A DNA stretch of 64,000 nucleotides from Oculina patagonica (Eukaryota). The stretch spans positions 15,252,001 through 15,316,000 of the forward strand of contig NC_135762.1 in the NCBI RefSeq assembly GCF_052425735.1. The letters are read 5' to 3'. The position numbers and the translations under genes are program-made. The notes below the pieces were generated by a model. That model searched no databases. It worked only from the letters and a program-made list of their open reading frames with translations, and had not been told where the DNA came from. Below are positions 760 through 27,212 of this stretch, one piece after another (the first letter of the stretch is position 1; every line of letters starts with the position of its first letter).

Positions 760-1125
760 TTAAGTTCCTGAAATTCGATTGTCATTTACAATATTTCTTG
801 GTGTAGAACGTATTTTGCCCGCAAACCATCCGCTTGAGGCCATCCCCTCTATGACTTGTCTATCGTCGGACGCTGCAGCAGGTTGAGCGGAATCTGGCTC
901 GCTCTCCACAATTAATTTTCCACTCTGCAGGTCAAACACTAGTCTTTCTTTCCCTTTACTTCCTTCTCCACCTCTTGCAATAACTTTAAGTCGACTTGCA
1001 ACCACCTCTGACTTCAATACTTGTGTACTACCGTCTTCCGCTTTTGTTTCTTCATCTTTCTGTATTACAAAGTGAAAGTCAAATTCTCTTGCGGCCTGTT
1101 GGTTGCTTTTCTCTGTTTGGTCCAT
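760..1125 (-). CDS. Small 'FF-tail' family protein P1 (121 aa, divergent member)
   Basis: ATG at 1125 (MDQTEK...). Contains ERLVFDLQSGKLIV...DRQVIEGMASSGWF, which aligns by eye with the LVFxPxTGKL...GFF core of the neighbouring paralogs. Intronless. Confidence 0.7.
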   Translation of the reverse strand: MDQTEKSNQQAAREFDFHFVIQKDEETKAEDGSTQVLKSEVVASRLKVIARGGEGSKGKERLVFDLQSGKLIVESEPDSAQPAAASDDRQVIEGMASSGWFAGKIRSTPRNIVNDNRISGT

Positions 1126-1404
1126 TGCAATGTAATCTAGAAGCTTTAGCTTCACATATACAACAAAGTTTCGATATATCTGAAGGGAATGTGACAAACC
1201 AGTAACCTTAAATAAATTATAAATCAAGAACACCAGTATCAATACTAAAATTTGGTCTCAACTTTGCATAGGGAAAAAGCCCTTTACGATTGTTTACAAT
1301 ACGTCCAGGCAAGATGCCGCTTCCGCTCTAGTGTCCAAAAATGGTATTTCTTTGTTATCTGGTTTTCCTTATTAGGTTTGATTCGAGTCACGTTGGTTAA
1401 CACT

Positions 1405-1485
1405 TTCCAAGAAAAAAATATGCATGAGGTCATAGTCTCGTTTAAGAAGTCAGATAACAAAGAGAAAGAGGTTGAAACCGAAAGT
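1405..1485. promoter_or_regulatory. Putative bidirectional promoter elements between P1 and P2: GAS and ISRE-like sites
   Basis: TTCCAAGAA at 1405-1413 (TTCN3GAA) and GAAACCGAAAGT at 1474-1485 (GAAANNGAAA), in the ~510 bp between the divergent ATGs at 1125 and 1639. Confidence 0.5.
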
Positions 1486-1638
1486 AGAGTGCGAAGAAGG
1501 GAAACCCAACACAAACGAGCAGAACGTCTACGTAAATAACTGGAGATATTCTAATAGTTCATCGCTCCATAAGCACTACGATACGAAGAATTGCTAGTCT
1601 TCTTCTTAAAGGTTGTCACGACAAGAATAATTTCGAAG

Positions 1639-1878
1639 ATGTCTTCTAACCCGCAACGCATTCAAGAACACCTCGAGAACAGAGGAGGCAGCTCTGAAGC
1701 GCTGGTGTTTGATCCTGCCACAGGAAAGTTGATGGTGAAGCCACAACGAGAAGCCCAAAATTCCGCCGACAGGACCGTCATGTTGGACATGAACAAGAGT
1801 GGATCTGGAGGATTCTTCAACTTCGGCGCTTGCGACTGGCGACAGACAAGTGATAGAGACTATGTTCTGAATTTATGA
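1639..1878 (+). CDS. Small 'FF-tail' family protein P2 (79 aa)
   Basis: ATG at 1639: MSSNPQRIQEHLENRGGSSEALVFDPATGKLMV...DRTVMLDMNKSGSGGFFNFG...; clear similarity to P3-P5. Confidence 0.8.
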   Translation: MSSNPQRIQEHLENRGGSSEALVFDPATGKLMVKPQREAQNSADRTVMLDMNKSGSGGFFNFGACDWRQTSDRDYVLNL

Positions 1879-2975
1879 ACACGACAATGAGTTAAATCAA
1901 TGCAGCGCAATGAAGAACTTTGCTACCTTTAAATCTCTAGCTGATAGGAACAGGCAGCGGACAGTTGTTGCAAAATTTGTTTTAGTTATCTGACAATTTG
2001 CTTAGAGTTACTCAGTCTACTGTAGAATAGTGACTCAGTATCAGGTGGCATCAGTACATACTTGTTATATTCAAATGTTTATAGCTCAGTTGGGATGTGT
2101 CCTGGCGAATGATAGTTCCCTTCCATAAACGTTAAAATTGTAAATGTATGTTTAAACTGAAATACATAATTTCTTGGCTTGTATTCGGGTCAGTATATAT
2201 ATTTTCTAAAATTTTAAGCACGCCATTTTGCACGCTTGGAAGTAGTCTTTTGTATTGAGCCATATTGATATTCTAGGAAATGTGGTGAATTATTTCAGAA
2301 TACAGTAAATATAAACCTTAGCATTGTCCACCCGGTTAATTAGTTTTTTTTTTATTGCTGGCTGTCGTTGCATTATTTTTTTGATGAAATCTCGGGAACA
2401 AAATAAAATATATGCTACTTGTCACCTTTCACCTGTTTGCTGGGGAGCCCCTATCATTATTTGTTTCCGAGAAATAAGCACTTCCGGTGGCTTTTATTAG
2501 TGGCATTGTTGTGGTTTTTTTTTTTTTTTTGGGGAAAATAATTTTTTTTTTTTTTTTTTTTTGGTCTTTTTTTTTTTTTCAGTTTCGACTTGGGAAAGAT
2601 CACGACATTCAATTGTCACGAAAGCATGACAGCAAACATGACGCGAGGGTTGAGGGTTGATATAAATACATGGGGACTAAAAGAACCCTTTTCGGCAAAA
2701 ACGAAATCATTTTATTCAAGGCTGTTTACCGCTTTCGTTGCACGTTATTTTCGTTACCTGCTTAGATTTGTTACAATCATTGAACGATACTGCCAATGTC
2801 TGTGTTTCGATTAAAATCTATATGACCACTTTATTAGGTATTTATACTAAGTAAAGATGAAATACTTAAGAAAGAACCAGACAGATTCTGATACATTGCA
2901 TACATCGATTATTCAATTGTCTTTTACTAACAATAATGCAACTTAGAAATGCTTTGCTGACAGTCAAAAACTCAT

Positions 2976-4268
2976 TTATTTCCCTGGAGACGAGAAAAAT
3001 TCGACATTTTCTGCAGTGGCCTCCATATCTTGGCATGTCTTGCAGTCAGATTTTCTTTCGCTCATCATTGGATACCACCTAAGAATTCCAGGCTTGTCGA
3101 ACCTATGAAAGCCGTCTGGTGGGTATCCAGCGTACTGCTGCTCTCTGCGGTTGGCCCACATGTAATAGGGAGCCACCAGATCCTTCTCCAACGGCGCCAG
3201 TGCGCTGTCCTTACCTCGGCACAGCTCTACCAGGGCTAACTTCACCAGCATGTTGCCAATGGGAATGATGTCAGACGAAAGCCCAACCTGAATCGTGGCC
3301 GTCACTTCGTCGTCTCCAACATAAGGAGGATTAGCCTCGCGAGCTTGACGGAAGGAAGACATCTCTTCCGCGCTGGCTTCCATCGCCGCATCAGCGTAGA
3401 TGCACGAGAAGCATGGGCCATCTTTTGGTCTAACTCGCAGCACTTCTCCCCCTGCAGCTCTAACGGCGCACTTTCCGTAGAAGGTGGGGATGCCCAGCTC
3501 TATGGACAATGTGTTGATGTTGAGTCTGCTTCTTATGTTATCGGTCGCAGCCATGATAACGTCGCATCCTTTGAGAATTCTTCTGGCGTCGTCTAAATTG
3601 TTGATGTTGGTGTTGTGAATCTCTACCTCAGCAAATGGGTTCTTGTCTAGGATGCGGTCTCGCATAACATTCGTCTTCAGACGCCCTAGATCGCTTAGCC
3701 CACAAATATGGCGGATGATGTTATGCAGCTCAATCCGATCGAAGTCGACCAATACAAACTTGCCAACTCCGGCCTTGGCCAGCTCTATTGCTACGTGGGA
3801 GCCGCCACTTCCAAGCCCAACCACTGCAACTTTTCGCTCCTCCAACAGACTCGACTCGAGTATGCCATGACTGCGTGAGTAAAGCTGGGATCTTCGTGGT
3901 TGGCGCAGGACAGCCGCTTGCTCTATGGGTTCAGTTGACTTCGGCCGCACACAAACTCTGACATGGTCGTCTTCAGAAACCAGGATTGCAATTTGTGGCT
4001 CATCGAGGGGTGGGAGATTGGATATTAGAGTAGAGGCAATTTTCAGAACCTCTGTACACGGAGGTAGCTCTTTAAAGACCTTGAAAACGACTCGCTTTTC
4101 TGGTTTACCCGGAGCGGCGCTGTATTTAACCCGGACGTGGATTGTGTCACAGTCGTCAAACGCTGTCACGGAAAAGCGTTTCTCACCGGCTTCTTCGTTT
4201 TTGAGGACATCAGTAAAATTAGGTTGCAAGAAACAAACAACTTTACGATTGTCTTCTTCTTCGCCCAT
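2976..4268 (-). CDS. ThiF/MoeB/E1-like adenylyltransferase (430 aa) with an unassigned N-terminal ~125-aa domain
   Basis: Arg-finger LYSR, Rossmann VAVVGLGSGG, DFDRIELHNIIRH, GRLK, ATDN and two Zn-binding CxxC pairs (CFSC, CKTC). Intronless. Confidence 0.92.
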   Translation of the reverse strand: MGEEEDNRKVVCFLQPNFTDVLKNEEAGEKRFSVTAFDDCDTIHVRVKYSAAPGKPEKRVVFKVFKELPPCTEVLKIASTLISNLPPLDEPQIAILVSEDDHVRVCVRPKSTEPIEQAAVLRQPRRSQLYSRSHGILESSLLEERKVAVVGLGSGGSHVAIELAKAGVGKFVLVDFDRIELHNIIRHICGLSDLGRLKTNVMRDRILDKNPFAEVEIHNTNINNLDDARRILKGCDVIMAATDNIRSRLNINTLSIELGIPTFYGKCAVRAAGGEVLRVRPKDGPCFSCIYADAAMEASAEEMSSFRQAREANPPYVGDDEVTATIQVGLSSDIIPIGNMLVKLALVELCRGKDSALAPLEKDLVAPYYMWANRREQQYAGYPPDGFHRFDKPGILRWYPMMSERKSDCKTCQDMEATAENVEFFSSPGK

Positions 4269-4315
4269 CGTATTTAGTTCCTGGTTCTTCTGATCGAACT
4301 AAAATCACAAATGTT

Positions 4316-4746
4316 GAAATTGAAATAAATCGATACCATCATTCTTAGAATTTCCATCCATCTTTTGATTGGATAATTTCGTTTCGGTGACGAAACTGCA
4401 ATAAATATAAGCCTCTTTTTCCTGGAATTTTATTGCCTGTTGAGATGCTAAACAACAGATCAAATTATACAGCTGATGTCAATCTGGTGTTTAGCGTTTT
4501 CAAAGACACAAGAAGCAAGAACGCGCTCACCTTAAAATTGTTTATTTGATGATCTGTTTAGCTTGCCTTCTTGTTACATACTATAAAACAGATCACAGTT
4601 TACTGATAGCACTGAAATTAAAATCATCTTGTTACGGATCAAAAATTATTTATTGGAAACTGAAATAGAAAATGAAACAAGGGAAAACACCGTCCCGTCA
4701 CGCTACAGCAGCTGTGAGTCGGAATGTCTTCCGCTTATTCTGAGAA
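4316..4746. promoter_or_regulatory. GAS/ISRE-like cluster upstream of the E1-like gene
   Basis: GAAATTGAAA 4316-4325, TTCTTAGAA 4342-4350, TTTCGTTTC 4377-4385, TTCCTGGAA 4419-4427, GGAAACTGAAA 4655-4665, TTCTGAGAA 4738-4746. Confidence 0.5.
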
Positions 4747-6060
4747 TTCCTTCTGTACTGATTGAGCATGCTCCAGTTTGTACGTTTGTACGTGGACTCT
4801 GGGAACGAGATTGCGTTTGTATATATGCTGAAATCTGGTGTTACGATACTTGGATAACGGCAATGAACTACAGTATTTTACAAAACTTGAATTATTACTT
4901 GTTGCTCAAAAACTGTTTCAAAGTTGCATTCAACAGTACGAATTATAAATTGCATTCGACAGTTATTTTCTTCTACTTGAAATGCTCAACATTACCTAGA
5001 ATGCTTTGTCCCCGAAGGTGTCGAGGACAGAGCTGAATTGATGGATTTATAACGAGCATGCACCCTTGCCGCTTGATTATGAACACATAAATTATTGCAA
5101 TCAACAAGGACGCGAGATGTGTCACAGCATTTAAATGGTGAGCCCCTCTCGGAGGTTTTTAGGGTACAAGGGAAAATGGCCTTGAAGAATTGGGAACACG
5201 GGAACAAAACCTGTCTTTCTGATAATTTTGAAAACCGGGATCTGAAAAATCGGCAAAATACTTCTAAGGAACAATACATCACAAGGGAATATCTTTGGGG
5301 AACGTTCGTCGGCTAGCTTCATTTCCAACGACATCAAAAAAATTGTCAACGTAGAATGAAACGGGCAGTTACAAAGACTCTTTCCTGGTTTATTGTGATA
5401 GTGCATCCAATCTGAAAAAGGTTGAAAAACTTAACTAAAAAACTTAACCCTTTCAAGTAACGTTTATCTCTAATTTGAAATAACAAGAAGCCACTCAATG
5501 ATTATGGTCTGCAATCAATACGCAGTAGTGATTTCCCAAGGACATTCATCTTAACAGCTAAGCATAACATCACTGTGGGAATGAAAAAGAAATAAGAAAA
5601 TGTTAAAAACGCACTGTTTTAAGAGACTCCTGTTTCAGGAAACACCCTGCATGTACGCATAATTTGACACGCTTTTCTAGCTACATTACAAGATTAATTG
5701 CTTACAAGAGGTTAATTTCCAAGAAAATCGATCAGGAAGTAATTGTAAAAAGTCTTTCTGACATGACCCTGGCAACAGCAGAACACATCAACAACAGAGG
5801 GTAGCAACGGGTTGGAACTGCAATGATAGACAGCTTAATTTTACAGAGTTCTTGTGAAATATAAAATATTCGCTCGACAAGTTTCTTGGTGGTAGTATTG
5901 AAAGTGGAGGTTCAAAGTTGTACTACAGTACGAGTTCCCGGACTGTGTTGTCCGAGTGTCCATCGAGTCCAAACACTTTAGCTTTTAAAAAATTTAGTAC
6001 AAGCTAATGTTCCAGAGTTACTTTGCCTCAGACGATCCCTGTGATCTCAGCTTGTCACGT

Positions 6061-6270
6061 TCAGCACACGCAAACGAAAAATCCTCCTCCATCACGCTTG
6101 TTCATAGCTGTGACAACCTCTCGTCCTGGCCTGATTCGAGCCTGTACTTTGTTCATTACCTCAAGCTTCCCGGTTTCAGGGTTAAAGACCAATGCTTCTT
6201 GTCGACTACCGCCACTTTCAAAAAAATTGGTTACTGCACCCTGCCTAGGACGGGATGGAGCTGAACCCAT
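6061..6270 (-). CDS. Small 'FF-tail' family protein P3 (69 aa, MGSAPS N-myristoylation motif)
   Basis: MGSAPS...EALVFNPETGKLEV...REVVTAMNKRDGGGFFVCVC*. Confidence 0.8.
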   Translation of the reverse strand: MGSAPSRPRQGAVTNFFESGGSRQEALVFNPETGKLEVMNKVQARIRPGREVVTAMNKRDGGGFFVCVC

Positions 6271-6810: not shown

Positions 6811-7107
6811 TTATCTTACAAAGAATCCTCCACTTCCAGGTTTGTTTACGTCCAAGACGACGTGACGACCTGGCCTCGTATCTTCCTTTCTTACTATTTC
6901 AAGTCTTCCTGAGGCCGAATTGAAGACCATCTCTTCCATTGCATTGCCACCATTTTCAAAAAACCTTTCCATCTTAGTAGGCTGTTCCTGGGGAGTAGCC
7001 GGGTACGACGAACCTGCTCTTGGTTCTTTTGGGATCTCCGGGGCAATCCGTGGACTTGGTTGAATGATCCTACTCGGAGGTCTTGAAACTGATGAACATG
7101 AACCCAT
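6811..7107 (-). CDS. Small 'FF-tail' family protein P4 (98 aa, MGSCSS start)
   Basis: MGSCSS, Pro-rich linker, EEMVFNSASGRLEI...RHVVLDVNKPGSGGFFVR*. Confidence 0.8.
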   Translation of the reverse strand: MGSCSSVSRPPSRIIQPSPRIAPEIPKEPRAGSSYPATPQEQPTKMERFFENGGNAMEEMVFNSASGRLEIVRKEDTRPGRHVVLDVNKPGSGGFFVR

Positions 7108-8056
7108 TTTTAGAGCGACATCAACCTTGCCTACGTGCTACTCACTGGAGATCTTGTATAGTAACGAGCTTTGTTGTGTTGATTTCAAACGTGAACTCGA
7201 ACAGTAGCCTGGGTTCCAGAAACCCTTTCTTACAGCGCTAAGATTAAGAGGGTATGGGGTGGGGTGGGGTGGAAAAATGAGACAAAACATCTTTCCCCTC
7301 CAGTCCCGACTATAAAGTGTAGAAAGACTAATTCAGTTATAACTTATGCCAAAATCAACGTATATTGATCTGTAATCAATGATTGGTGTCTTTCCACAAA
7401 GGCAGGCACCAGGGGTCTAATCAAAGACAGTGCGTAGCCTCAAATAACTCCAACAGATAACTGTCCGGCTATATTCAAGATCAGTGTTGTGATGAATTTG
7501 TTTGGTTAGGGAACAGTTCTCATTTGTGGCTAAGGGGGGACAGAGGGGGAGTCGGCGATATTATTTTACCAACGCAGGCATAAACATGGTGTACCACACG
7601 ATGGCCGAAATATGTTATATCCAGATAACAGGCCCCTCGTTCAGTTATGTGACGCCAAAGCGTGACATGCTTTGCTGCATTACCCAGAAAAAGCACCCTC
7701 TCCCCCTTCCAGCATAAAATAGGACACTCCCCAGGAAGTAATTCTGACACGACCCTAGCAACAGCAAAACATATCAACAACAGAGGGAAGCAACGGTTGT
7801 GGAACTGCAATGATGGAAAGCTTAATGTTACAGCGTTTATGTGTTACAGCGTGAAATACAAAATATTCGATCGAAAAGTTTCTTGGTGGTAGTGTTGAAA
7901 GAGGAGGTTAAAAAATGAACTACAGTACGCGGAGTTCCGTGGCCAGGACATGTGTTGTCCGAGTGTCCATTGAGTTCAAACACTTCAGCTTGTAAAAAAA
8001 TTCAAATTTCCAGTTAATGTTAAAGAGTTACTTTGCCTCAGATGATCCCTGTGATC

Positions 8057-8278
8057 TCAGCTTGTCATGTTCAGGACAAAGCGAAAGAATCCCCCTCCGT
8101 CAGGACTGTTCATAGCTGTGACAACCTCTCGTCCTGGCCTGCCATGAGCCTCTGCTTTGTTCGTTACCTCCAGCTTTCCAGTTTCTGAATTAAAGACCAG
8201 CTCTTCTTTTCGATTACCGCCACTTTCCAGAAATTTTGCTACTTCACTTGGTCTCGGACGTGATGGAGCGGAACCCAT
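8057..8278 (-). CDS. Small 'FF-tail' family protein P5 (73 aa, paralog of P3)
   Basis: MGSAPS...EELVFNSETGKLEV...AMNSPDGGGFFRFVLNMTS*. Flanks are homologous to the P3 flanks. Confidence 0.8.
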   Translation of the reverse strand: MGSAPSRPRPSEVAKFLESGGNRKEELVFNSETGKLEVTNKAEAHGRPGREVVTAMNSPDGGGFFRFVLNMTS

Positions 8279-8498
8279 GTTTCAATTCAGGATGTGAGTT
8301 TTGCTGTGGTATAGCCGTTTATTAAAGTTAATTTCATGCATACTTCCTGTACTGCATAGTTTGGATTGACACTTATTTGCTTAAACGAGGTCATTTTCTG
8401 AGAAAATCAGGAAGCCCTCTTAAGACGTCTAGATGTGACAAGAGCTACTACTGTAAAAATGGAAGAAATGGAAACTGTGAAATATTATATTACATATA

Positions 8499-10352
8499 TA
8501 GATTACTTCATGGAAAGTGCGCGCGTACGGTGTTTACGCACGAGTTGTTGACGTATCAGAAATCGAACGAACAACAAAATCGTTGAAAAAAGACATTTCA
8601 TGAGATTATTCTCGTGTCTTAAAATTGTTCTAATTGGATAAGAAATCGAATATCAAGAGTTTTTTACTCAACAAGTACAAGAATGAAATATAGAAATAAG
8701 AACTAAGAATACGTAACCGTGCTATTGCAAGGGAGGGCTATCTTCATCCGAAGAATCTAAAATACGTTTAACACGCTTGAAGGTGTGCTTTCTTGTTGCT
8801 GAGTACGCATTAGGCGACTGACTTACTGTGTTTATAGAAATGTTAAAGTGTCCTCCATGAAACACGGCTCCGCTAAATACACTTGCTCCAGGCAATGTTG
8901 GACTGCTTGACGACTGAAAACTACAAGACAGAGTTTCAGCTTCACTCTCTGTAGCCAATGCTCGATGAACTTTTGCAGAAGATTCAGTCGAGGTCGCACT
9001 CAGTAGCCTTGACATTTTTTTTTTTGCTGTTGTTGGGAAATGTGGCTATAATTGTTAATGCTTTGGACATTTTTGTGGCCTGGGAGCTGCATAATGTGAC
9101 TGGGAGGTATATCGCTGTCGTTTAGTTTTTGTACCATGCGTTTTCGAGCGCTGTGATAAGTCAGTCGTTTACTTGAAAGGCCTCCTTTTTCCGCCATGGT
9201 TTTCATCAGACTATTCAATTTGTTCTGACCCATTGCACTTGATTTAAACCACAGTTTTTTCGACGAAGGACTTTTTGTGTAATTTATTCCGAGATAGAAT
9301 GGCGCATCAGGTTTATACATCGCGTCAGGTCTCTTTTCGGAATAAATTTTGTAAACGGCAACTGGATCTCTTTCAGGTGGACCGTTTGGTGCTGCAAAAG
9401 CCTTCGGTTTAACAGCTCTGACATTTCGAGGTTCAGCTCCCGTTCTAGTTTTCGTTTGACGTTCAGAATACTCTAGGTATTCAGTCCGTCGGCTTCCATG
9501 TGAAGTTCCACGTCGCCCCAAGTCATCTGCCGATGTTCTTCACAGCCTCTCAAACCAAAATGCACTGAATTGAAAAGCCAGAGTGTGTTTAGCAAAGCTT
9601 CGGCATTTGAGATTCCCAGTAAATTCTTTTCGAAAAGAATGTTTTCCTCCACATCAGTCAAAGCTTCGGCTGCGTTGGGTTTGTTCCCTTTGCCTTCTTT
9701 TTTCAGTTGTTTGCTGCGAGCTTCCAGACATTTTCTTGCTTGATCAAACACAGTGTCTTCGATAATACTCGCTGAGTACTTGCGTTATCTTAAATACCGG
9801 TTAAAACTTGAGAACAACCCTCGAAGGCTCGATGGTTCATAGTCTTGACCATCTTTTCTTTTCACACTAAGAATGAATTCACTAAGGTAACGCCTGAGCT
9901 CCTCTGGTTGGATGTCTTCAATTTTTCTTTGTTCGTTTTTCTCCAGCAGAAATGTAGAAAGCAGATTCACATCCCGCTGCGTTTTCGCTCGAGTGTTTTT
10001 GTTTTCCTGCTCTGTAATATATTCTTCGATGGGTTTACTTAATGGTTTAAACCTACTGCCAGAAGATTCAGCCATAGTTGTTAATGAGAACGTTTTAAAC
10101 CGTCCACAAATGTACTGCGAAAGGCCAAAAAATTTCAAGCAGTGAGAAAGCTAGCGCCATCGACAAAGCTACCACGTTTGCTCCACGTTCATTGGAAATG
10201 TTGATGCGTTTTGACAGCCGCTTTCTGATTGGACGAAACGGGTTTCTCACGTGTAAGAAAGTCGTTTCGCGGTTGTCATTGGCTGCGAGAATTTCCGAAC
10301 CGTGTTTTTAACAGATCAATTCTAACTGTAAATCTCAGTATGTATGAAATAA
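8499..10352 (-). mobile_element. Crypton-type tyrosine-recombinase DNA transposon with a disrupted ORF (~8722-10075)
   Basis: Split ORFs carry tyrosine-recombinase motifs HFGLRGCEEH, YHSARK and PGHKNVQSINNY. The block is absent at the equivalent point of the paralogous units (~6520 and ~12430), which gives approximate ends. Confidence 0.8.
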
Positions 10353-10608: not shown

Positions 10609-10791
10609 TCAAAGGTATAGCAGAATTGGGAAATATTGTCTGAAAAAGAATCCTCCACTTCCAGGTTTGTTTACGTCCAAGACGACGTGACGACCTGGCC
10701 TCGTATCTTCCTTTCTTACTATTTCAAGTCTTCCTGAGGCCGAATTGAAGACCATCTCTTCCATTGCATTGCCACCACTTTCAATAATAAC

Positions 10792-10837
<46 letters not shown>

Positions 10838-11080
10838 TAATAATAATAATAATAATAAAAAAATAATAACTGTTTTATTGGAAGAGCTTCCACATAGTGG
10901 CTCTTCGTCTTCCAAATAAACTAAATTTACAAAAAGCCTTTCCATCTTAGTAGGCTGTGTCTGGGGAGTATCCGGGTACGACGAACCTGCTCTTGGTTCT
11001 TTTGGGATCTCCGGGGCAATCCGTGGACTTGGTTGAATGATCCTTCTCAGAGGTCTTGAAATTGATGAACATGAACCCAT
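10609..11080 (-). pseudogene. P6: copy of P4 disrupted by a ~150-bp insertion
   Basis: Near-identical to P4 on both sides of an insertion at ~10783-10930. The 5' half is MGSCSS...KMERLF and the 3' half is ESGGNAMEEMVFN...GGFFFRQ. Confidence 0.8.
10783..10930 (-). mobile_element. Short retroelement 3'-end with (TTA)n tail
   Basis: On the minus strand AATAAA is followed by a long (TTA)n tract; the block is absent from P4. Confidence 0.55.
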
Positions 11081-12051: not shown

Positions 12052-12254
12052 TCACCGTCGAAAGAAGCCAGAGCCAGTGTCTGATCCACTTGGGTTTGAT
12101 ATGATTTTCACTTTCGTTGTGTTTCTATAGGCTTCTCATCTGGTCATAACCTCCAGGTTTTTGGATTAAAGACCAATGCTTCTTGTCGACTACCGCCACT
12201 TTCAATAAAGTTAGTTACTGCACTCTGCCTCTGATGTGTTGGAACTGAACCCAT
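12052..12254 (-). pseudogene. P7: chimeric FF-tail pseudogene (P3-type 5' half, P8-type 3' half)
   Basis: Reads MGSVPTHQRQSAVTNFIESGGSRQEALVFNPKT, then a frameshift, then LEVMTR*EAYRNTTKVKIISNPSGSDTGSGFFRR*. Not in the ORF track. Confidence 0.8.
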
Positions 12255-14686: not shown

Positions 14687-15364
14687 TTACATCAGTACGC
14701 AACAAGAGCTTCTGTTAGGGTGATAAACCATTAAGGGTCGCTCGATCTCTCTAGTGTCTTTCCGAGTTGATTTTTGAAGTATTTCTTGTAGAGAAGCTAT
14801 ATCTCCATTCGTGTTAATACACTCTGCTCCATCTTCAAAAATCTTAAGACATTTTGAACGAAAAGGACTTTCATTCGACAGGAGGTTAAATCTTCCTTGT
14901 ACCATCTCGCGCTTTGTTCCAGTCTCTTCAAACAGAAAGCATCCAACACTTACGGCGACTTCTCCATAGTCATCCGTTTCAATGTTGGCAATAAACAAGA
15001 GAAAGCGACTCAAGCCATATTTTGGCATGTTTGTCCACACTGTTCGTTGATCCCCGCCACTTGGTTGTCTAAGACCGATTCTGTGGTGGGAATGCCACTC
15101 GCCAATGTGGCAAACGCCTTCCTTGCCAGTCAAAATGGAGCCAACTTTCTCTAAGTACTCCACGTCTTGGTAAAAAGAGTGGGTAGTCCTTTTACAATTT
15201 TTACCAGGACCCAATACAAGTTGTATTACTGCACTATGATCGTCGGACCACAGACCGAACAAATCTCCGCCGGTCTCCAGGCTTTGGTTCTTTATAACAC
15301 AGGCGCACATTTGCTTGTACTCACTGGCATAGATAGCGACTGTAAATTCTCTATCTGTGGACAT
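14687..15364 (-). CDS. JAB/MPN+ (JAMM) metalloprotease 1, prokaryotic-JAB-like, C-terminal CaaX (CVLM)
   Basis: ETGGDLFG (catalytic Glu) and HIGEWHSHHRIGLRQPSGGD (HxH-x7-S-x2-D JAMM motif). Intronless; ends SSCCVLM*. Confidence 0.9.
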   Translation of the reverse strand: MSTDREFTVAIYASEYKQMCACVIKNQSLETGGDLFGLWSDDHSAVIQLVLGPGKNCKRTTHSFYQDVEYLEKVGSILTGKEGVCHIGEWHSHHRIGLRQPSGGDQRTVWTNMPKYGLSRFLLFIANIETDDYGEVAVSVGCFLFEETGTKREMVQGRFNLLSNESPFRSKCLKIFEDGAECINTNGDIASLQEILQKSTRKDTREIERPLMVYHPNRSSCCVLM

Positions 15365-17001: not shown

Positions 17002-17808
17002 TTAAAGTATTTCACAAACGGGGCAGCGCTTTCTTATTTCATAAACAATTCGAAACAGCCTACCCCCTTCATTTTCACTCGTAGCCCCTTGCTCCGGGTC
17101 GTGTTTGCGACGCTTCTTCGGTTTAATATCCACCACAGCTTCTTCTTTATGTTTGGGTGGCCTCCTCCGATTATCACTCATCACAGGTCGCTCGCTCAGC
17201 ATAGACGTCCCTGTTGTTACTTCCAAAGACTTCACGTCTTCATCCCTGTTCAGACACTCTGCTCCTTTTTGTAAAACGCTCAGGCATTTTGGACGGAAGG
17301 GGCTTTCATTCGGCAAGAGGTGGAACTTTCCTTGCAACACTTGTAACTTCTGGTTGGTTCCCTTTACAAATTCAAACAGAAAGCATCCAACGCTAACAGC
17401 TTCGCATCCATAACTTTGTGTCTCAATGTTGGCAATAAACAAAAGAAAACGGCTTAAGCCATATTTAGGCATGTTTGTCCACACTGTTCGTTCATCTCCG
17501 CCACTTGGTCGCTTAAGACCGATTCTGTGGTGGGAATGCCACTCGCCTATATGGCAAACACCTTCCTTGCCTGTCAAATTGGAGCCAGCTTTCTCTAGGT
17601 ACTCCACGTCTTGGTAGAACGAGTGGGTTGCTCGCTGACAGTTTTTACCAGGACCCAATACAAGCTGAATTACTGCCCTACGATCGTCAGACCACAAACC
17701 GAACAAATCTCCGCCGGTTTCCAGGCTTTGGTTCTTCAAGACCCAGGCACATATTTCTTTGTATTCGTTGGCATAAATAGCCACTGTAAATTCCCTTTTT
17801 GTCGACAT
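17002..17808 (-). CDS. JAB/MPN+ (JAMM) metalloprotease 2, C-terminal polybasic region and CaaX (CEIL)
   Basis: Close paralog of JAB1 with ETGGDLFG and GEWHSHHRIGLKRPSGGD. Tail includes KPKKRRK and ends RKRCPVCEIL*. Confidence 0.9.
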   Translation of the reverse strand: MSTKREFTVAIYANEYKEICAWVLKNQSLETGGDLFGLWSDDRRAVIQLVLGPGKNCQRATHSFYQDVEYLEKAGSNLTGKEGVCHIGEWHSHHRIGLKRPSGGDERTVWTNMPKYGLSRFLLFIANIETQSYGCEAVSVGCFLFEFVKGTNQKLQVLQGKFHLLPNESPFRPKCLSVLQKGAECLNRDEDVKSLEVTTGTSMLSERPVMSDNRRRPPKHKEEAVVDIKPKKRRKHDPEQGATSENEGGRLFRIVYEIRKRCPVCEIL

Positions 17809-17880
17809 AGATCCGCTAAGACTTTCAAAGGTTTTTCTAAAAATTCTGACTTTGAACTTATGTTGATACTATCATGTCAA

Positions 17881-19181: not shown

Positions 19182-19727
19182 TCACCGTCGAAAGAAGCTA
19201 GAGCTGTCTGATCCACTTGGGTTCGTTATAATTTTTACCTTCGTCGTGTTTCTATAGGCTTCTCGTCTGGTCATTACCTCCATTTTTCCTGTTGAAAGGA
19301 CCATAACTAAGACAAAGCCTGGATATCGCTCAGGATCTTTCGAGAACTCGCTCACTGACGGTTGACGGTAACTATGGGACGCAACGTTTCGAGTGGGGCC
19401 GTCGTTTAACTTTCGAGAAGAGTCTACGTTGTAGCTTCTAGGAGATGCTGTATTCAAGTCTCGAGGAGGGACAGTGTTAAAGTTTAGATCGGGAACGGCA
19501 TTTAAGTTTCCATTTGGGACTGAGGTGAAGTTTCCAGGAGGCATGGGGAAAAGGTTTCCGTGTGGAGGAGCGTAAAGGTTCCCTGGCCATGGAGGAAAGG
19601 CGGCTAAGTTTGCAGGATGGACAGGATTGAAGCCTCCAGATGGTACAATGATGAAGTTTCCATAAGGGTCGAACATAAAGTTTCCATAAGGTGTAGCGAT
19701 TATGGGTCCAGAAGGGACAGTCCCCAT
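19182..19727 (-). CDS. FF-tail family protein P8 (181 aa) with N-terminal Pro/Gly/Asn octapeptide repeats
   Basis: MGTVPS start, about 12 degenerate PxGN[FL]xxx repeats, then FVLVMVLSTGKMEVMTRREA...KIITNPSGSDSSSFFRR*. Confidence 0.75.
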   Translation of the reverse strand: MGTVPSGPIIATPYGNFMFDPYGNFIIVPSGGFNPVHPANLAAFPPWPGNLYAPPHGNLFPMPPGNFTSVPNGNLNAVPDLNFNTVPPRDLNTASPRSYNVDSSRKLNDGPTRNVASHSYRQPSVSEFSKDPERYPGFVLVMVLSTGKMEVMTRREAYRNTTKVKIITNPSGSDSSSFFRR

Positions 19728-21714: not shown

Positions 21715-21936
21715 TCTTCTCACTTGGGCACAAAAATGCTACTTGGTAGTTAAAGCAGTACTGCAAATAGCCCAACAGACGGTCACGAGCTGTCAAATTG
21801 TCCACTTCGAACCGGAAATAATTCTGCATATATCTTTATGTAACGCTTCACGTGTAACGCCACCGACTAAGAGCTTCCACGAAACTCGTTTGTTATAGCC
21901 CCCTCGAGCGGGTTCTCGAGCGGGTGGGGAAAGGTA

Positions 21937-22111
21937 ATAGGCCATTTCCGAGTTACCATTTGCCTCTGCTTCAAAACGAGTCTGCGTGCGAAACCATTCA
22001 AATGAGTTTGTTTTGCATGAAAATGGACCTGTAGGTAAAACTCATATGAACGGTTTCGCACGTAGACTCGCTTTGAAACAGAGGGAAAGGGTAACTCGGA
22101 AATGGCCTATT
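21937..22111. mobile_element. Short palindromic MITE (second copy at ~55708-55894)
   Basis: AATAGGCCATTTCCGAGTTACC...GGTAACTCGGAAATGGCCTATT inverted ends; a related copy occurs later in the window. Confidence 0.7.
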
Positions 22112-22581
22112 GTGTATATCAAAATGCCTGTACATTTTCCGCGACTCTTCTCCTGATTAAACTAAGCCCCCCCCCCCCCCCCACCCCTCCCGCCGAAAAG
22201 TTTCAGTACGCCAATTCTCGATATATTCAAATTCTAACTTGGATTTACTCATCCCTGAATCTCGATGAGATATCTTTTGTTTTTTTTTCCTTCACGCCTC
22301 AGAGGCAAGCCAGAGTTTTAACGTATTGGAAGAAAGAGGGTCCATACGGGGTCGTAATGGACTTCCATATGGGTCCTTGATGGAATCCGTTGTTACTATC
22401 ATGCCATTCAATGATAAAATTTTTGTGTTCGTATGCCGCAAAATGAGGAACAGAACAATTATATGTGATGGAAACCAACAATGGTAACTATTCTTATTCA
22501 ATAAGGTGTAAGGATGATTGGAGCAGAAAACACGATAGAATGATAGAAACATGATAGTACAATATTGTGTTTATTATCATT

Positions 22582-22614
22582 TTTCAGTTTCCAAGAAATC
22601 AGTATTTCGTAGAA
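22582..22614. promoter_or_regulatory. Overlapping ISRE and GAS sites upstream of the E2-like gene
   Basis: TTTCAGTTTCC 22582-22592 overlaps TTCCAAGAA 22589-22597; TTCGTAGAA at 22606-22614. Confidence 0.55.
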
Positions 22615-22769
22615 ATAATTATAAATGCATAATGTAAGCCACGGATTGGCGAGCTTGTTATTGGTTGCTTTTATTTGCACAGTGTGGTAAAACGGAAGCA
22701 CTTCCGCAATTCTTCGAGTTTGTGTCAAAGCGAAAGCATCGACAGTAAAGACATTAACTGACCGTAAGA

Positions 22770-23219
22770 ATGAGTTGGAGTTCGCAGCAACGAACAAGAC
22801 TCGGGTTGGAGAAAGATATTTTAGACAGCAAGTTAAAGAACGTGTCGTGGATTAATCCCACATCGGCTGGAAACACCCGAGTCGAATGGCGAGTGAACAC
22901 AAACAACGACAACAGCTACACGCTTCGTGTCTACCTCTCGGCGAATTTTCCAAATGAATGCCCGATACTGGTTGTAAGCTCTCCTTCATCTCCTCTGAGG
23001 AAAAAGAATGGATCTCTTCTCGACAGTACGGACGGGAGTGATCATGTTTATGGAAGCATCGATGGCTTGACACAAATTTGCCACTTCAATAAAAGCAAGT
23101 GGACGAGCGAAAATACCGTCTACCAAGTCCTTATGAAAGGGCGCATCTGGCTGGAAGCTTACGAAATTCATCGGCGTACTGGGGAATATCTGGAGAAATA
23201 TCTGGCGCACATGCAGTGA
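22770..23219 (+). CDS. Divergent E2/UBC-fold conjugating enzyme (149 aa)
   Basis: N-terminal helix RLGLEKDIL, LRVYLSANFPNECPILVV (FPxxxP), HVYGSIDGLTQICH (Cys at the UBC active-site position) and WTSENTVYQVL (conserved Trp). Intronless. Confidence 0.8.
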   Translation: MSWSSQQRTRLGLEKDILDSKLKNVSWINPTSAGNTRVEWRVNTNNDNSYTLRVYLSANFPNECPILVVSSPSSPLRKKNGSLLDSTDGSDHVYGSIDGLTQICHFNKSKWTSENTVYQVLMKGRIWLEAYEIHRRTGEYLEKYLAHMQ

Positions 23220-25011
23220 ATTAAGACTGAACGATCATCCAGCTGATTTTGGTGGATAAAAATATAGTTTTGCAAGCAGTAGTTCCATCACGAAGGACAT
23301 TTAATAATGTAAGGAGACATTGACTTATAGAACTGAGTAACAAGTTATTTCTGATCATGTCCGATGTGAGTGTAGTACGAAATTGAGGTTGTTGTAGTAA
23401 TTATTTAACTTTTAAAAGTAATGTTCTGGATGTCGGCAGTGGTAACCACAATGCCGTCACATCGAAATATGCGCCATTTATGATTTATTGGCAAGTGATT
23501 AAGAGCCTGCTTTTTTAGTCTAGATGTGCTTACGTATTTAGTAGTCAAAGTACTAAACGATGACCTAAATGGAAAATTTACATTTTCATCAAGTTGTATT
23601 TTAAGGTCTTTTAACTTGGTACCTGCATATCTTGCTTTAAAGCATAAGGCAAAAGAGAAAAATTGTACTAACAATTAAATTTCCGTGTCATACAAATTTA
23701 TAACATCGCAATAAATCAAAGCATTTTCTCGGAAGGTGGTTGTTTTTCTCTACATTTTTCTCAGAAGACTTTGAAGGGTCACTTTAACCTCACTGCATGG
23801 GGCAGGCTTGTAACGCAAAAACATGAATTCCAATCAATAATATTTCTTATTGGCAGGAAAAAAGGAGAAATGGTTTCAAATGCGACTACTATAATGTTTT
23901 CTTTTTATAAACCTTTGGGCAGTGGCACAAGATTGCTACATTCTCTGTCCCCTAATAGTGGCATCAAGCTTGATAAAGCTGAATCAATCATACTTTTTAT
24001 CTGATCAACAGCATTTGGTACTAGCATGTTCCAAATTCAAGGAAAATTCTAGCAGTGTATAATTTTATAGTTTTGTTTACGGATAGATCACGCACTTGAA
24101 TTGCTATAGCCTTTTGTTTATGTGAAAACAATTTACGATTTTCTTTCTTGGAAATACGCGAGTTTTCAACTACATTAGCACCATATGTTTGATGAGTTTT
24201 TTTCACACGCCGGATTCTTTCATTCAGGAGTTTGCCTGTAAGACAAGAGCGCATACGCAAAATACGACATCTATTGAGCTTAATCGGCCTTAGAACACAC
24301 TCGAGATCAATAAATTCTGCATTTACTAGCGAATACATTTTACTGTTAAATGAATACATTTTTGTGGTGACAACGCGCATAGGTCAATAACTGAATTCGG
24401 GAATGTGACCCTTTCTTTATAGTTTACAACTAAATCGTTCCAACATGGAAAGTATAAGTTACTCCTCCCCACGCAGGTTTGTTAACAACTAGTCAGTACT
24501 TCAGTTTATGGATATTAACGGCTCGTCTTAGAAAAGTTATGGATAAAATATTTACAATATAATTCTCAAGGGGGTATCATAGTTTTCTTGTAAGACACAC
24601 AACATACCTTTCGGTTCGTTTTAGAGAAATTGCTCGCGTTGCTTACTACCAGGCAGTTGATAATAATACAATTTTACAATCGAACTTGCAATCCTCGCAG
24701 TTTCGGACAGCTATAAAGTAATTAGTTGTGTCGCCTCGACTAATCGCAAATTATAATAACAAGTGAGTGACTACAAAAAACAAAGACAACTTCCTGAATT
24801 GGAACATCACGGCAAATACAGGCGGCCAGTCAGTGTAAGGAAGAGCGGCTGATAATGGAGCTAACGTTTAAAATGTACAATCCTCCTCGATCCTGTCTGT
24901 CGAGCCAACTTTGCCCATCTCTGCGATCTCAATTTCTTGCAGACCAAACATCTTCCAGGAACGGTAATAAAAACTCCAAATCCGTCGGACTCCGCAAGGG
25001 CAAGAGCATTG

Positions 25012-25618
25012 TCATCGTCTAAAGAAGCTAGAACTGCCTGATCTGGATTAACTTGGGGTCGAAACAATTTTCACTTTGTTTGCATTTCTCTGAGCTTCTC
25101 GTCTGCTCATGACCTCCATCTTTACCATAGAAAGGATCATAACTAAGACAAAGCCCGGGTATTGCTTGGGATTTTTAGAAAACTCCTTCACTGATGGATA
25201 GGAGTGCTTCTGGGACACAGCGTTAACGTTTCGAGAAGGGGCCGCGTTTAAGTTTCGTCGAGGGGTGGCATTCAATTTTCGAGGAGGGTCAACGTTGTTG
25301 TTTCGTGGAGGGCTGAGGTTATACCTTCTAGAAGGGACAACGTTAATGTTACCAGGAAATACGGCGTTTACTATAAAGTTTTGTTGAGAGATCGAGATAA
25401 AGCTATTCCAGGAGCCACGCCGTCAGGGTTTCCTAGAGGCGCGGGGAAGACGTTTTCAAGAGGAACGGCGAAGCTGTTCACAGGAGGAACGGCAGTGAAG
25501 TTTTCGGGTGCCGCGACTTTCAAGCTTTCAAGAGGGTGACAGCAAAGTGTCCACATGGATGGGCGAAATAGTTTCCAGAAGGAACGGCGATAAAGTTACC
25601 GGACGGGACGGCCCACAT
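25012..25618 (-). pseudogene. P9: degenerate paralog of P8
   Basis: Starts MWAVPSGNFIAVPSGN (Gly2 lost), has frameshifts in the repeat region and ends KVKIVSTPS*SRSGSSSFFRR* with a premature TAA at 25048-25050. Confidence 0.75.
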
Positions 25619-26780
25619 TTTCTAATATAACGACGTTTCACAAGTGAAATTGTTACCAAACGACAAAGACCTAAACTTTCCTCAGGTAACAGATTCAGCT
25701 AACATTGCTGAGTACTTTCCGATGTATATTTATCTCTACTGGTCAGCGGTACGAAAGTAACTGAGTCTACAGTCTCCATGATCGATCAGCGGTACATGTA
25801 ATCTCGTTCCCATTGCCCGCGCCCCACTTGACCAGCGGTGGCGCTTCCTGACCCCTTGTTGATGGGGACGCGGGCTCTGGAAACGAAATTACGGTACGTG
25901 TAGAAATCTGCTGGTCCCGCGAATAAAACATCTGCTCTTGACTAAAAATTTGATTGAGGAAGTATTATTTGTCTAATTATTAACAGAAAAGAAAATTCAT
26001 TACAAGGAAAAATTAAAGGGATGATGACATGAAAGTTTTGCTTTGAACTCAGAGCTTATCAATAATTGCTTACTAACTTATATAACCACAACATAGCAAT
26101 GATTACAATAAGTTTTCTTTCGTTCTAACGTTGAGTTATCAGCTGGTTAGTCATTTCGATATCATTGAATGATTTATGACTAATCTACAGAGCAAAGGAT
26201 TTTCGATGATACATTTGTGATCAATTTTATTTAACACCATTATTTAACTGAAATGGTAACGGGAGTCGTGCATGGTTTTTGCACTCACTTCGACATGGAA
26301 ATGAACTTGGATAATTTTATCAGTTTTTGTATTTTCGAAAAGTTACAAATGATCCTAAAAGTGCCACGTCTAAATAATTCTTTAGGTTATAGTGGTCCCT
26401 GAAAATTCATTAAAAGAACATATAATTTGCTACACGAGAAGTTTTACACTGTTTAATTTTTGTCAAATTTGAGCTCTGACCATGTTAGAAACCGAAAGTT
26501 CACGGCAGTCCTGCTAGTTTGAAATTAGGTTACTGCAAAGTTTACTTGTGCATTACGTTGAATATTGTATTTGTATTTTTTTTATACTTCCGTTGTATGA
26601 CTTAAAAATATGCAACTATATGGCATATTATAAGTTGCATTGCTAGCTAGGTGAGTTCGAACACTGAACTTCAGTGATTGAAACCGAAAGTACAAAAAGC
26701 TGAGTCAGTATTCCTCTTAATGCAGGTAACCAACAAACATCTCTTCTCAGTGAAAACCAGACAACCACAGTTCTGTCTTG

Positions 26781-27212
26781 CTAGCCGAGCCAGATTAGTC
26801 CTTCCCTCTGATATCGATGGCGATCCGCTTTATTGCAGATTCCAAGTTGTCCACTTGTAACGTCGAAATATAAAAGCCTTTCGGTTGAACTTCCTTGCAA
26901 ATATTCCAAGATCGTGTCTTCGTTAGACGTTTGCCGGAAGAACCCAGAGTTATCTGAACGGTCGGATTCACTTGAACTAGAAACGATTTTAACCTGTGCC
27001 CCGCTAGTGCGCGCTTCTAGTCTAGTCATAATCTCCATTTTTCCCGTAGCAAGGACCAAGACCAACACGAAGCCGGGATAACGATCTGGGTTGTTTGAGA
27101 ACTCGCTTACGGATGGACGGCTGCTCCGTTGAGAAGTTCTACTGTTTTGAGGACGAACGACTTCGGCGTTTAAATGTCGAGGAACGCGGCGTGTACTTTC
27201 TTCTGCCCCCAT
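26781..27212 (-). CDS. FF-tail family protein P10 (143 aa) with two tandem core domains
   Basis: ATG at 27212 (MGAEES). Core 1 is FVLVLVLATGKMEI...SDNSGFFRQ; core 2 is TILEYLQGSSTERLLYFDVTSGQLGI.... Confidence 0.7.
   Translation of the reverse strand: MGAEESTRRVPRHLNAEVVRPQNSRTSQRSSRPSVSEFSNNPDRYPGFVLVLVLATGKMEIMTRLEARTSGAQVKIVSSSSESDRSDNSGFFRQTSNEDTILEYLQGSSTERLLYFDVTSGQLGICNKADRHRYQREGLIWLG

Follow-up and report, generated by a model that had tools for sequence, protein, structure and literature searches.

A cluster of bacterial-type E1, E2 and JAMM protease genes with small Phe-Phe-tailed peptides in the coral Oculina patagonica: a candidate peptide-conjugation system in animals

The DNA considered here, hereafter the window, is a stretch of 64,000 nucleotides (nt) from the coral Oculina patagonica (assembly GCF_052425735.1, contig NC_135762.1, positions 15,252,001-15,316,000 of the forward strand). 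Between its positions 760 and 27212 lie genes for a ThiF-type adenylating enzyme (E1), an E2 of the UBC fold, two JAMM metalloproteases (JABs) and a family of small proteins, here called peptides, that end at or near a pair of phenylalanines (FF). The original prediction, made from the sequence alone, was that this cluster encodes an undescribed ubiquitin-like conjugation system of animals. Its computational follow-up is described below, from the genes themselves to their bacterial and animal relatives and to the chemistry that they may perform.

Genes of the cluster and their products

The open reading frames (ORFs) that had been named, comprising one E1, one E2, two JAMM proteases and ten FF-tailed paralogs, are all present at their predicted positions. 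By a six-frame motif scan and tblastn, seven of the ten paralogs are intact and three are broken. They are listed here by position in the window, along with matches to profile hidden Markov models (HMMs), some of which describe cyclic oligonucleotide-based antiphage signaling systems (CBASS); lengths are in amino acids (aa).

2976-4268, minus strand: E1, ThiF-type adenylating enzyme, 430 aa (Pfam ThiF 1.4e-35; PADLOC CBASS E1-E2 models 1e-31)
22770-23219, plus strand: E2, stand-alone UBC-fold protein, 149 aa, with FPNxxP, His92, Cys104-His105 and Trp111 (PADLOC E2 3.5e-6)
14687-15364, minus strand: JAB1, JAMM metalloprotease, 225 aa, CaaX box CVLM at 222-225 preceded by Cys (PADLOC JAB 1.2e-16)
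17002-17808, minus strand: JAB2, JAMM paralog, 268 aa, with a basic KKRRK stretch and a CaaX-like end, CEIL (PADLOC JAB 1.7e-15)
763-1125, minus strand: peptide type A variant, intact, 121 aa from the first Met, tail ..SSGWF (family HMM 1e-14; cluster representative P0269)
1639-1875, plus strand: peptide type A, intact, 79 aa, tail ..GSGGFF plus 16 residues (family HMM 5e-26)
6064-6270, minus strand: peptide type A, intact, 69 aa, start MGSAPS (myristoylation pattern), tail ..GGGFFVCVC (family HMM 1.8e-18)
6814-7107, minus strand: peptide type A, intact, 98 aa, start MGSCSS (myristoylation and possible palmitoylation), tail ..GSGGFFVR (family HMM 5e-15)
8060-8278, minus strand: peptide type A, intact, 73 aa, start MGSAPS (myristoylation pattern), tail ..GGGFF plus 8 residues (family HMM 1e-18)
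10639-11080, minus strand: peptide type A copy, broken by an insertion of ~80-110 nt with an (ATT)n microsatellite (~10780-10870) and a frame change (tblastn pieces 10862-11080 and 10639-10782)
12055-12254, minus strand: broken chimera of a type A N-terminus and a type B C-terminus (..GSGFFRR), with in-frame stops (tblastn)
19185-19727, minus strand: peptide type B, intact, 181 aa, start MGTVPS, Pro/Gly/Asn/Phe-rich repeats, core ..FVLVMVLSTGKMEVM.., tail ..SSSFFRR (family HMM 0.012)
25021-25618, minus strand: peptide type B pseudogene in several frames, tail ..SSSFFRR out of frame with the core (motif scan, tblastn, frame reading)
26784-27212, minus strand: peptide type B, 143 aa, start MGAEES, first unit ending ..NSGFF (two HMM domains, full-sequence E=1.5e-6)
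34187-34267, minus strand: fragment resembling the N-terminus of the 26784-27212 copy, beyond the range first described (tblastn E=3.9e-4)

The E1 is composed of an N-terminal alpha/beta domain (residues 1-~135), an adenylation domain (~140-413) and a C-terminal tail that ends ..VEFFSSPGK. It carries GLGSGG at residues 151-156, DFDRIELHNIIRHICG at 175-190 and CxxC motifs at 286 and 409. The parts that are invariant among 51 E1 homologs, an ATP site with GxGxxG, Asp and Arg and a zinc site of two CxxC, were all located in it. No Pfam match was found for its N-terminal domain. The PADLOC E1-E2 profile aligns to this protein in its E1 half only (profile positions 168-424 of 426), and the CBASS Cap2/Cap3 models are the nearest PADLOC models for E1, E2 and JAB alike. 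When the model of a natural peptide-E1 fusion was compared using Foldseek, Cap2 (7TO3) was the best match, followed by BubCD, UBA5, MoeB, ThiF, Atg7 and MccB. Only for Cap2, BubCD and Atg7 does the fold alignment run past the adenylation domain, over ~600 columns in the case of Atg7, and for this reason the N-terminal domain probably recruits a separate E2, by analogy to the N-domain of ATG7 and the linker domain of Cap2.

The E2 is indeed encoded by a separate gene, 18 kb from that of the E1 in the window and adjacent to it in bacteria. It has no strong Pfam match, yet its AlphaFold2 model, built on 22 homologs, reaches a predicted local distance difference test score (pLDDT) of 94, and the best 50 Foldseek matches of this model in the PDB are all UBC E2s, Ubc9, UbcH5, UbcH7 and Rad6 among them (template modeling scores 0.47-0.58). 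Cys104-His105, Trp111 and FPNxxP are invariant among the 22 homologs and His92 is nearly so, in keeping with the E2 fold and active-site Cys that had been read from the sequence. The two JAMM proteases also prove intact as predicted, each with a complete motif (ETGG at residues 30-33 and HSHH........SGGD at residues 91-105) that is kept in most homologs, and they are 73% identical to one another over the catalytic domain. The NCBIfam Cap3 equivalog scores 14.6 bits, where the cut-off is 200; set beside the PADLOC JAB matches near 1e-16, this places the JABs only tentatively, as relatives of the Cap3 type rather than members.

A CaaX C-terminus is found in 65 of the best 120 JAB homologs. It occurs in two conserved styles, ..CCSLM and ..RRRCPFCALL, and other homologs end in a hydrophobic, tail-anchor-like segment or are Cys-rich. 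The CaaX box of JAB1 is conserved in its orthologs and the orthologs of JAB2 end in C-A/V/T-L-L; the JAB1 end is predicted to be of the farnesyl plus palmitoyl type and that of JAB2 of the geranylgeranyl type. Lipidation signals are also present on the peptides: five of the seven intact ORFs in the window start with MG and fit the PROSITE N-myristoylation pattern MGxxx[STAGCN], and an MGS start is seen on two of the broken copies. The MG start is absent from octocoral and sponge peptides. At the level of motifs, both kinds of signal would be eukaryotic additions gained in corals, and they suggest that the stony-coral form of the pathway is bound to membranes. Bacterial JABs of the related cassette described below (8556-9524 in locus L001, 1903-3018 in L029) carry a C-terminal extension that is weakly UBC/RWD-like (E2 HMM 1.8e-4 in L029); this extension is lost from the animal JABs, which have lipidation or tail-anchor signals in its place.

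Two types of peptide can be distinguished by their consensus, ..LE.GG..E.LVF(N/D)..TGKL.V.....VV...N...GGFF for type A and ..FVLVMVLSTGKMEVM.....SSFFRR for type B. The five intact type A copies match the family HMM at E=1e-14 to 5e-26. The type B copy at 19185-19727 fits the myristoylation pattern and has tblastn cross-matches to type A, and in the copy at 26784-27212 the first unit is followed in frame by a shortened, type A-like second unit that is without an FF end. The interruption of the copy at 10639-11080 has no clean GT-AG boundaries in a three-frame reading and is accordingly more likely a disruption than an intron; this copy is probably a pseudogene. Of the predicted Gly/Ser-rich FF tail, it is the aromatic pair (G-F-F) that is conserved, and not the Gly/Ser-rich stretch as such.

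The bacterial cassette and its animal descendants

Homologs of the E1 were sought among 5.8 billion proteins. The matches among corals came from Desmophyllum pertusum and O. patagonica (91-93% identity) and also from Actinostola and Dendronephthya, and those among homoscleromorph sponges from Oscarella lobularis, Oscarella pearsei and Corticium candelabrum (42-47%). Cyanobacterial E1s are 44-48% identical to the window E1 over ~90% of its length, the best at 46-48% and ~380 bits. Solved eukaryotic E1s are far weaker, with UBA5 best at 60 bits and UBA2/UBA3 at 28-31 bits; UBA5, ThiF and MoeB fall at 50-60 bits. With these scores, and with trees that group the animal proteins with bacterial ones, the early impression that the enzymes are unlike UBA1-7, ATG7 and MOCS3 holds good. 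The E1 homologs of Oscarella lobularis and Corticium candelabrum (P0054, P0383) are listed by NCBI as 'ubiquitin-like modifier-activating enzyme 5' and 'MOCS3-like'; judged by sequence, neither name fits, and both appear to be misannotations.

In bacteria, the relatives of the window E1, E2 and JAB (43-48% identity) are found together in a JAB-E2-peptide-E1 cassette, whose kinship with CBASS Cap2/Cap3 is only remote. The operon of Aerosakkonema funiforme encodes a JAB (322 aa), an E2 (149 aa; 44% identical to the window E2, E=7e-44) and, last, an E1 that is 48% identical to that of the window. This E1 has 64 extra N-terminal residues, ..QKLVFDPTTGELVV.....PDAVVADQIAEEGFF, which hold the motif of the coral type A proteins. 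A scan using the E2 profile, with one genome per prokaryotic species and annotation by HMM, located 30 such loci, mostly in cyanobacteria and actinobacteria. The cyanobacteria include Nostoc, Anabaena, Microcoleus, Trichodesmium, Spirulina, Pseudanabaena, the sponge symbiont Hormoscilla and the ascidian symbiont Prochloron, and beyond this phylum the cassette occurs in Actinomycetota, Proteobacteria, Binatia, Planctomycetota and Thermodesulfobacteriota. Gene order varies with the lineage (JAB-E2-peptide-E1 in cyanobacteria, peptide-E1-JAB-E2 in actinobacteria, E1-JAB-E2-peptide in proteobacteria). The peptide, whether free, fused or both, was found in 25 of the 30 loci and, on this comparative evidence, is the ancestral fourth member of the bacterial operon.

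The peptide family was delineated using a profile of 13 sequences, searched against 1.84 billion representatives at E<=1e-3, which returned 280 proteins, mostly of 56-140 residues. A hairpin motif followed by an aromatic pair is seen in 111 of 127 small matches; the pair is FF in 98 of these 111 and is preceded by G in 94. A typical member is ~60 residues long and ends in G-F-F plus 0-8 extra residues. The stop codon falls exactly at the aromatic pair in 7 genuine family members and 1-6 residues beyond it in 49, and never at the preceding Gly. One example is the free 72-residue peptide of the Acaryochloris plasmid pREB3, with its stop directly after GFF. Several proteins are tandem precursors of two units (P0249, P0261, P0271, P0287, P0364), one is a fusion of peptide and JAB (P0301), and in 21 of the 36 bacterial-type E1s aligned, mostly cyanobacterial, the peptide is fused to the N-terminus of the E1. 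The junction in these fusions lies directly after GFF, and unfused E1s begin 1-4 residues further on. Free and fused copies exist side by side in the operons of loci L012, L021 and L026. It is by these comparisons, namely the fusions to E1 and JAB, the tandem precursors and the ends at or near G-F-F, that the proposed role of the small proteins as modifiers is supported.

The peptide does not appear to share the ubiquitin fold. In the AlphaFold2 model of a natural fusion (pLDDT 80), its helices span residues 3-19 and, more briefly, 55-59, and its strands 26-31 and 36-41, with a further short strand near 52. This predicted arrangement is a helix plus hairpin and not a beta-grasp, which has the order beta-beta-alpha-beta-beta over about 70 residues or more. 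The pLDDT is 71-85 in the peptide and below 50 at the GFFA junction, which is consistent with an exposed linker or cleavage site. Neither the window small proteins nor the free Acaryochloris peptide match a family in Pfam, NCBIfam or PADLOC, and a PDB sequence search with the peptide profile gave chance matches only. The description of the modifiers as non-ubiquitin is in line with all of these results.

The only other recurrent neighbor among the 30 bacterial loci is a STAND NTPase of ~455 residues with an N-terminal helix-turn-helix (HTH) and an NB-ARC/nSTAND1 domain, encoded divergently beside the JAB gene in 14 cyanobacterial cassettes (for example at 7012-8370, minus strand, in L001 and 4443-5837, minus strand, in L012). 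Neither the window nor the animal loci contain a counterpart of this NTPase. Two other settings were observed. A viral or mobile-element contig from IMG/VR (L041) encodes an HTH-JAB, an E2 and a fusion of a peptide-like segment and E1 beside a serine-recombinase-like ORF, and a metagenomic locus (L009) has a tandem peptide, a short E1 and a JAB directly beside cas2; the upstream ORF of L009 was considered as an E2 and rejected.

Beyond the window, the same four kinds of gene are linked at four other animal loci:

Oscarella lobularis: E1, four JABs, E2 copies and a peptide within 21 kb
Dendronephthya: three E2s, a JAB, an E1 and two peptides
Desmophyllum locus 1: E1, E2 and peptides
Desmophyllum locus 2, the ortholog of the window: E1, the ortholog of the 1639-1875 peptide at the same relative position, more peptides, and JABs

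Taken with the peptide found beside the enzymes in 25 of 30 bacterial loci, these arrangements indicate clustering beyond chance. The original prediction had staked itself on linkage in related genomes, and the genes are linked in Desmophyllum (at both loci), Dendronephthya and Oscarella and form one operon in bacteria. It had also called the E1 gene intronless, which is true in the window and not of the E1 ortholog of the octocoral Dendronephthya, which is split by introns.

Between the window and Desmophyllum, DNA alignment is left in the coding parts only. The E1s are 91% identical (Desmophyllum L042) with a ratio of nonsynonymous to synonymous substitution rates (dN/dS) of 0.09. The 1639-1875 peptide, whose ortholog adjoins the E1 in Desmophyllum L042 and in a short Logan contig (L044), has a dN/dS of 0.18, and the JAB1-JAB2 paralogs have one of 0.13. 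This range (0.09-0.18) denotes purifying selection. In E1 trees, the animal sequences form one clade (Shimodaira-Hasegawa-like approximate likelihood ratio test support 100), with sponges sister to cnidarians and octocorals apart from hexacorals; this clade joins the cyanobacterial radiation, with actinobacteria outside. In the E2 tree, the animals likewise form one clade (92), here beside actinobacteria (90). Because the two trees place the animals differently, the donor can be named as a bacterium with a cassette of the cyanobacterial or actinobacterial type, and no more finely than this.

Another possibility is that the genes are ordinary members of eukaryotic pathways, bacterial contamination or the decaying relic of a transfer, as might be argued from the NCBI names UBA5 and MOCS3-like and from the three broken peptide copies in the window. 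This possibility is countered by the scores given above (50-60 bits for UBA5, ThiF and MoeB vs ~380 for cyanobacterial E1s), by the absence of a rhodanese domain from the window E1 in the Pfam scan, by the intact catalytic motifs and the low dN/dS, and by the CaaX and myristoylation signals of eukaryotic kind. The DNA of the window is itself eukaryotic in character (~39% G+C), eukaryotic transposons are present inside the cluster, and the genes sit in Mb-scale animal scaffolds amid transposons and collagen-type genes. An entry for the E1 in the Oscarella pearsei transcriptome set (EukProt) is the only transcript-level hint. Owing to the synteny of the animal loci, the introns in the octocoral, the transposons in the cluster, the dN/dS range, the single animal clades and the Oscarella pearsei entry, these are animal genes and not contamination; canonical UBA5/MOCS3 orthology is rejected together with contamination, and this whole group of explanations is highly improbable. 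CBASS membership is rejected as well. That animals possess a functional, bacterially derived E1-E2-JAB-peptide module is, in turn, regarded as nearly certain.

The simplest reading of its history is a single ancient transfer, with vertical inheritance and numerous losses thereafter, although two transfers from close unsampled donors or a transfer from animal to animal may also account for the data. From its presence in both homoscleromorph sponges and anthozoans, it follows that the module was possibly held by an ancestor shared with all other animals. Cyanobacterial symbionts of sponges and ascidians bear the cassette (L019, L020, L022 from Hormoscilla; L027 from Prochloron didemni) and are a plausible ecological route of transfer into animals, but the trees do not put the animal clade beside these genera. 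A phage vector is unsupported, since the viral collection gave a single distant contig.

Several other elements share the window with the cluster. A broken Crypton-like tyrosine recombinase, in three ORFs with DUF3504, Phage_integrase, QRICH1 and SAM-like pieces, lies between peptide copies at 9000-10138 (minus strand). Farther along are a Myb/SANT-like ORF (36322-36927, plus strand), a Harbinger-type DDE_Tnp_4 transposase in two overlapping pieces (38369-39179, minus strand) and, near these elements, a 232-residue ORF without a family match (40566-41264, minus strand). Three paralogous Cys-rich ORFs of 120-148 residues (44113-44547, 47510-47956 and 54698-55060, plus strand) are hydrophobic at both termini and contain a Ser/Thr-rich stalk; they match nothing in Pfam and, from these features, look like secreted or glycosylphosphatidylinositol-anchored proteins.

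A proposed conjugation pathway and its weight

From the comparisons above we infer a pathway in each of its chemical steps, together with the exact cleavage site, the target and any role in defense. The FF peptides would be made as precursors with a short extension past the conserved G-F-F. A JAB would trim this extension and, in bacteria, would also free the peptide from E1 or from tandem repeats. The E1 would then adenylate the freed C-terminus, most probably at the carboxylate of the second Phe, and the activated peptide would pass to Cys104 of the E2, possibly by way of the invariant Cys in the RHxCG motif of E1, and from there to an amino group of a target. The JABs would also undo the linkage. 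In stony corals, where N-myristoylation is predicted for most of the modifiers and prenylation for both JABs, tagging and untagging may take place on membranes, with the target gaining a lipid anchor.

Trimming, adenylation, thioester formation and transfer are favored because the cluster follows the pattern known for ubiquitin-like modifiers, with a small gene set aside for the modifier next to E1, E2 and JAB, modifier-enzyme fusions, precursors in tandem and an invariant end that carries a variable extension. The mature end is likely Phe-Phe and not Gly, in that conservation is stronger for FF than for G and some genes terminate right after the pair. On the sequence evidence as a whole, conjugation of the FF-peptides by the cluster along these lines is judged fairly probable.

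A different product could be envisaged. As for a ribosomally synthesized and post-translationally modified peptide (RiPP), the E1 might adenylate the peptide C-terminus to yield a modified, cyclized or nucleotidylated product, as MccB and PaaA do, with the JAB serving as a leader or follower protease and no protein conjugate being formed. The relatives of the E1 by sequence and fold include MccB and PaaA, the short peptide encoded beside it is not a beta-grasp, and the extra N-terminal domain of E1 could clamp such a peptide. A UBC-fold E2 with an invariant Cys-His is, however, a constant part of the cassette and has no role in known RiPP routes, and no exporter, transporter or immunity gene recurs in the 30 bacterial loci. 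Moreover, the tandem precursors and the E1 and JAB fusions resemble the logic of polyubiquitin, and the signals that the coral peptides carry are those of cytosolic N-myristoylation rather than signal peptides. These features weaken the RiPP alternative, which is considered quite unlikely.

Several points do weigh against conjugation as proposed. To our knowledge, a bulky Phe as the adenylated residue is without precedent among the E1s of ubiquitin-like modifiers, and a cut between G and FF, exposing Gly, may be made instead. Neither a target nor an E3 was identified. The three type B copies match the family HMM weakly (E=1.5e-6 to 0.13), and what they share with the family is the hairpin motif and the FF tail. 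The Logan contig, which was considered as evidence of expression, is genomic and colinear with the window. In the alignment of E1 homologs, the stretch from the first CxxC to the QVGLSSD helix is free of any conserved Cys, and the Cys of RHxCG is the sole invariant non-zinc Cys of E1; because the crossover-loop Cys of ThiF, ATG7 and Cap2 is thereby absent, the relay from E1 to E2 is uncertain. The E1 Cys of Cap2 is dispensable in vitro (bioRxiv 10.1101/2022.03.31.486616), which would allow for direct attack by the E2. Lastly, an aromatic-pair tail also ends E1s of the cyanobacterial, actinobacterial and animal types (..DxFFG, ..EDNIFAS, ..SSYFGAPEGVR and, in the window, ..VEFFSSPGK) and partly co-varies with the peptide end, so FF could be a docking element and not a reactive end. 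Short E1s of the proteobacterial type have neither this FF-like tail nor the N-domain.

This tail, which mimics the end of the peptide, also lends itself to another interpretation, in which the peptide is not transferred at all but acts as a removable subunit of E1, regulatory or structural, or as its pseudo-substrate. The true substrate would then be elsewhere, for instance the FF tail of E1 or an unlinked protein, much as the CD-NTase is for Cap2. In many cyanobacteria, E1 and peptide form a single polypeptide, within which the peptide is modeled with good confidence, and the E1/E2/JAB modules of CBASS act on a protein tail that is not ubiquitin-like. Against a subunit, however, stand the ten copies per single E1 in the window, the multi-unit tandem precursors, the fusion to JAB, the free and fused copies side by side and the variable C-terminal extensions after an invariant FF. 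Proteobacterial cassettes, moreover, keep the peptide although their E1 is devoid of both tail and N-domain. An E1-subunit role is thus thought unlikely, and conjugation of the peptides is preferred.

Should conjugation occur, a wider proposal may be advanced, if only tentatively and with slightly less than even confidence. Animals would have a covalent tag in the form of short, non-ubiquitin-fold and often lipid-anchored peptides. A bacterial-type E1-E2 pair would link these by a C-terminal Phe-Phe to proteins or lipids, and prenylated JAMM proteases would take them off again. The parent cassette would be an undescribed conflict or defense system, and the animal cluster its domesticated descendant in immunity or symbiosis. 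If true, this would represent a kind of protein tagging not described in animals, in a cluster shared with other corals and some sponges, and would add a class of modifiers that are neither beta-grasp nor Gly-terminated to E1/E2 chemistry, to which the CBASS cyclase tail is so far the sole exception. It would also stand as one of the rare instances in which animals kept an entire bacterial pathway of several genes as a linked cluster, apparently since before the split of sponges and cnidarians. The myristoylated tags and prenylated proteases, as read from motifs, suggest a rewiring to membranes in which conjugation is a way to lipid-anchor a target. The system is missing from the usual animal repertoire of ubiquitin-like pathways, and public annotation mislabels its E1. 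In bacteria, the compact four-gene cassette spans at least six phyla, lies next to STAND NTPases and is open to anti-phage testing.

Comparison with known conjugation systems

No description of the cassette or of its animal homologs was found in the openly searchable literature, including Iyer 2006, Kaur 2020 and the Ledvina and Chambers preprints (subscription-only papers, such as Burroughs 2011, Mol Biosyst, were outside the search), and within this scope the system may still be called undescribed. A 'thif family protein' has been listed as an anthozoan gene of bacterial origin (Bhattacharya 2016, PMC4878875); it may be this E1. Sporadic bacterial operons with E1-like, E2-like and JAB proteins were classified as 6a-6e (Iyer, Burroughs and Aravind 2006, PMC1779556). 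None of these classes combines a stand-alone JAB, a stand-alone E2, an E1 with the present N-domain and a short, FF-ended peptide without a beta-grasp.

It is from type II CBASS that E1, E2 and JAB all draw their best HMM matches, and E1 its best fold match (7TO3). This system too has a non-canonical, homodimer-type E1 with an extra N-terminal or linker domain. The substrate of Cap2/Cap3 is not a beta-grasp protein; a flexible C-terminal tail suffices, and the JAB both trims it and reverses its attachment (bioRxiv 10.1101/2022.03.31.486616). Cap2, however, is a fusion of E2 and E1, which are separate proteins here, and its E2 is ATG3/ATG10-like, whereas the present E2 is close to canonical UBC proteins in its Pro-rich motif, the Trp after its Cys and its full set of helices. 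The cluster also differs in its dedicated substrate, a ~60-residue peptide ending in Phe-Phe, in the absence of a crossover-loop Cys from E1 and in its presence in animals. Neither a CD-NTase nor an effector was found among the window ORFs or recurrently beside the 30 bacterial loci.

In their organization, the Bil (BilABCD) and Bub systems are similar, with separate genes for E1, E2 and a JAB/deubiquitinase (DUB) and a dedicated small modifier in one operon. The DUB pre-processes the C-terminus of the modifier (bioRxiv 10.1101/2023.09.26.559546), and BubCD is among the top fold matches of the E1. Their modifiers, however, are beta-grasp ubiquitin-like proteins that end in Gly or Ala-Gly, in contrast to a predicted helix-plus-hairpin with no ubiquitin-like match and an aromatic end. 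The ATG7-ATG3/ATG10-ATG8/ATG12 system shares a homodimeric, non-canonical E1 with an E2-recruiting N-domain, a precursor trimmed by a protease, and membrane-associated chemistry. Here too the modifiers, ATG8 and ATG12, have a beta-grasp fold and a C-terminal Gly; ATG7 bears a Cys on its crossover loop, the protease ATG4 is of the cysteine class and not a JAMM enzyme, and there is no orthology, the animal genes of the cluster grouping instead with bacterial ones.

Similar in the nature of the peptide are Pup and MccA, which are short, lack a ubiquitin fold and react at the C-terminus, and MccB is itself a ThiF-family enzyme that acts on a peptide. Pup, however, is attached by a glutamine-synthetase-like ligase and not by an E1 and E2, and MccB makes a peptidyl-nucleotide antibiotic without an E2 or a JAB. 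Together, these comparisons show the chemistry of E1, E2 and JAB to be the known part of the system, and its modifier class, animal host and predicted lipidated form to be the new.

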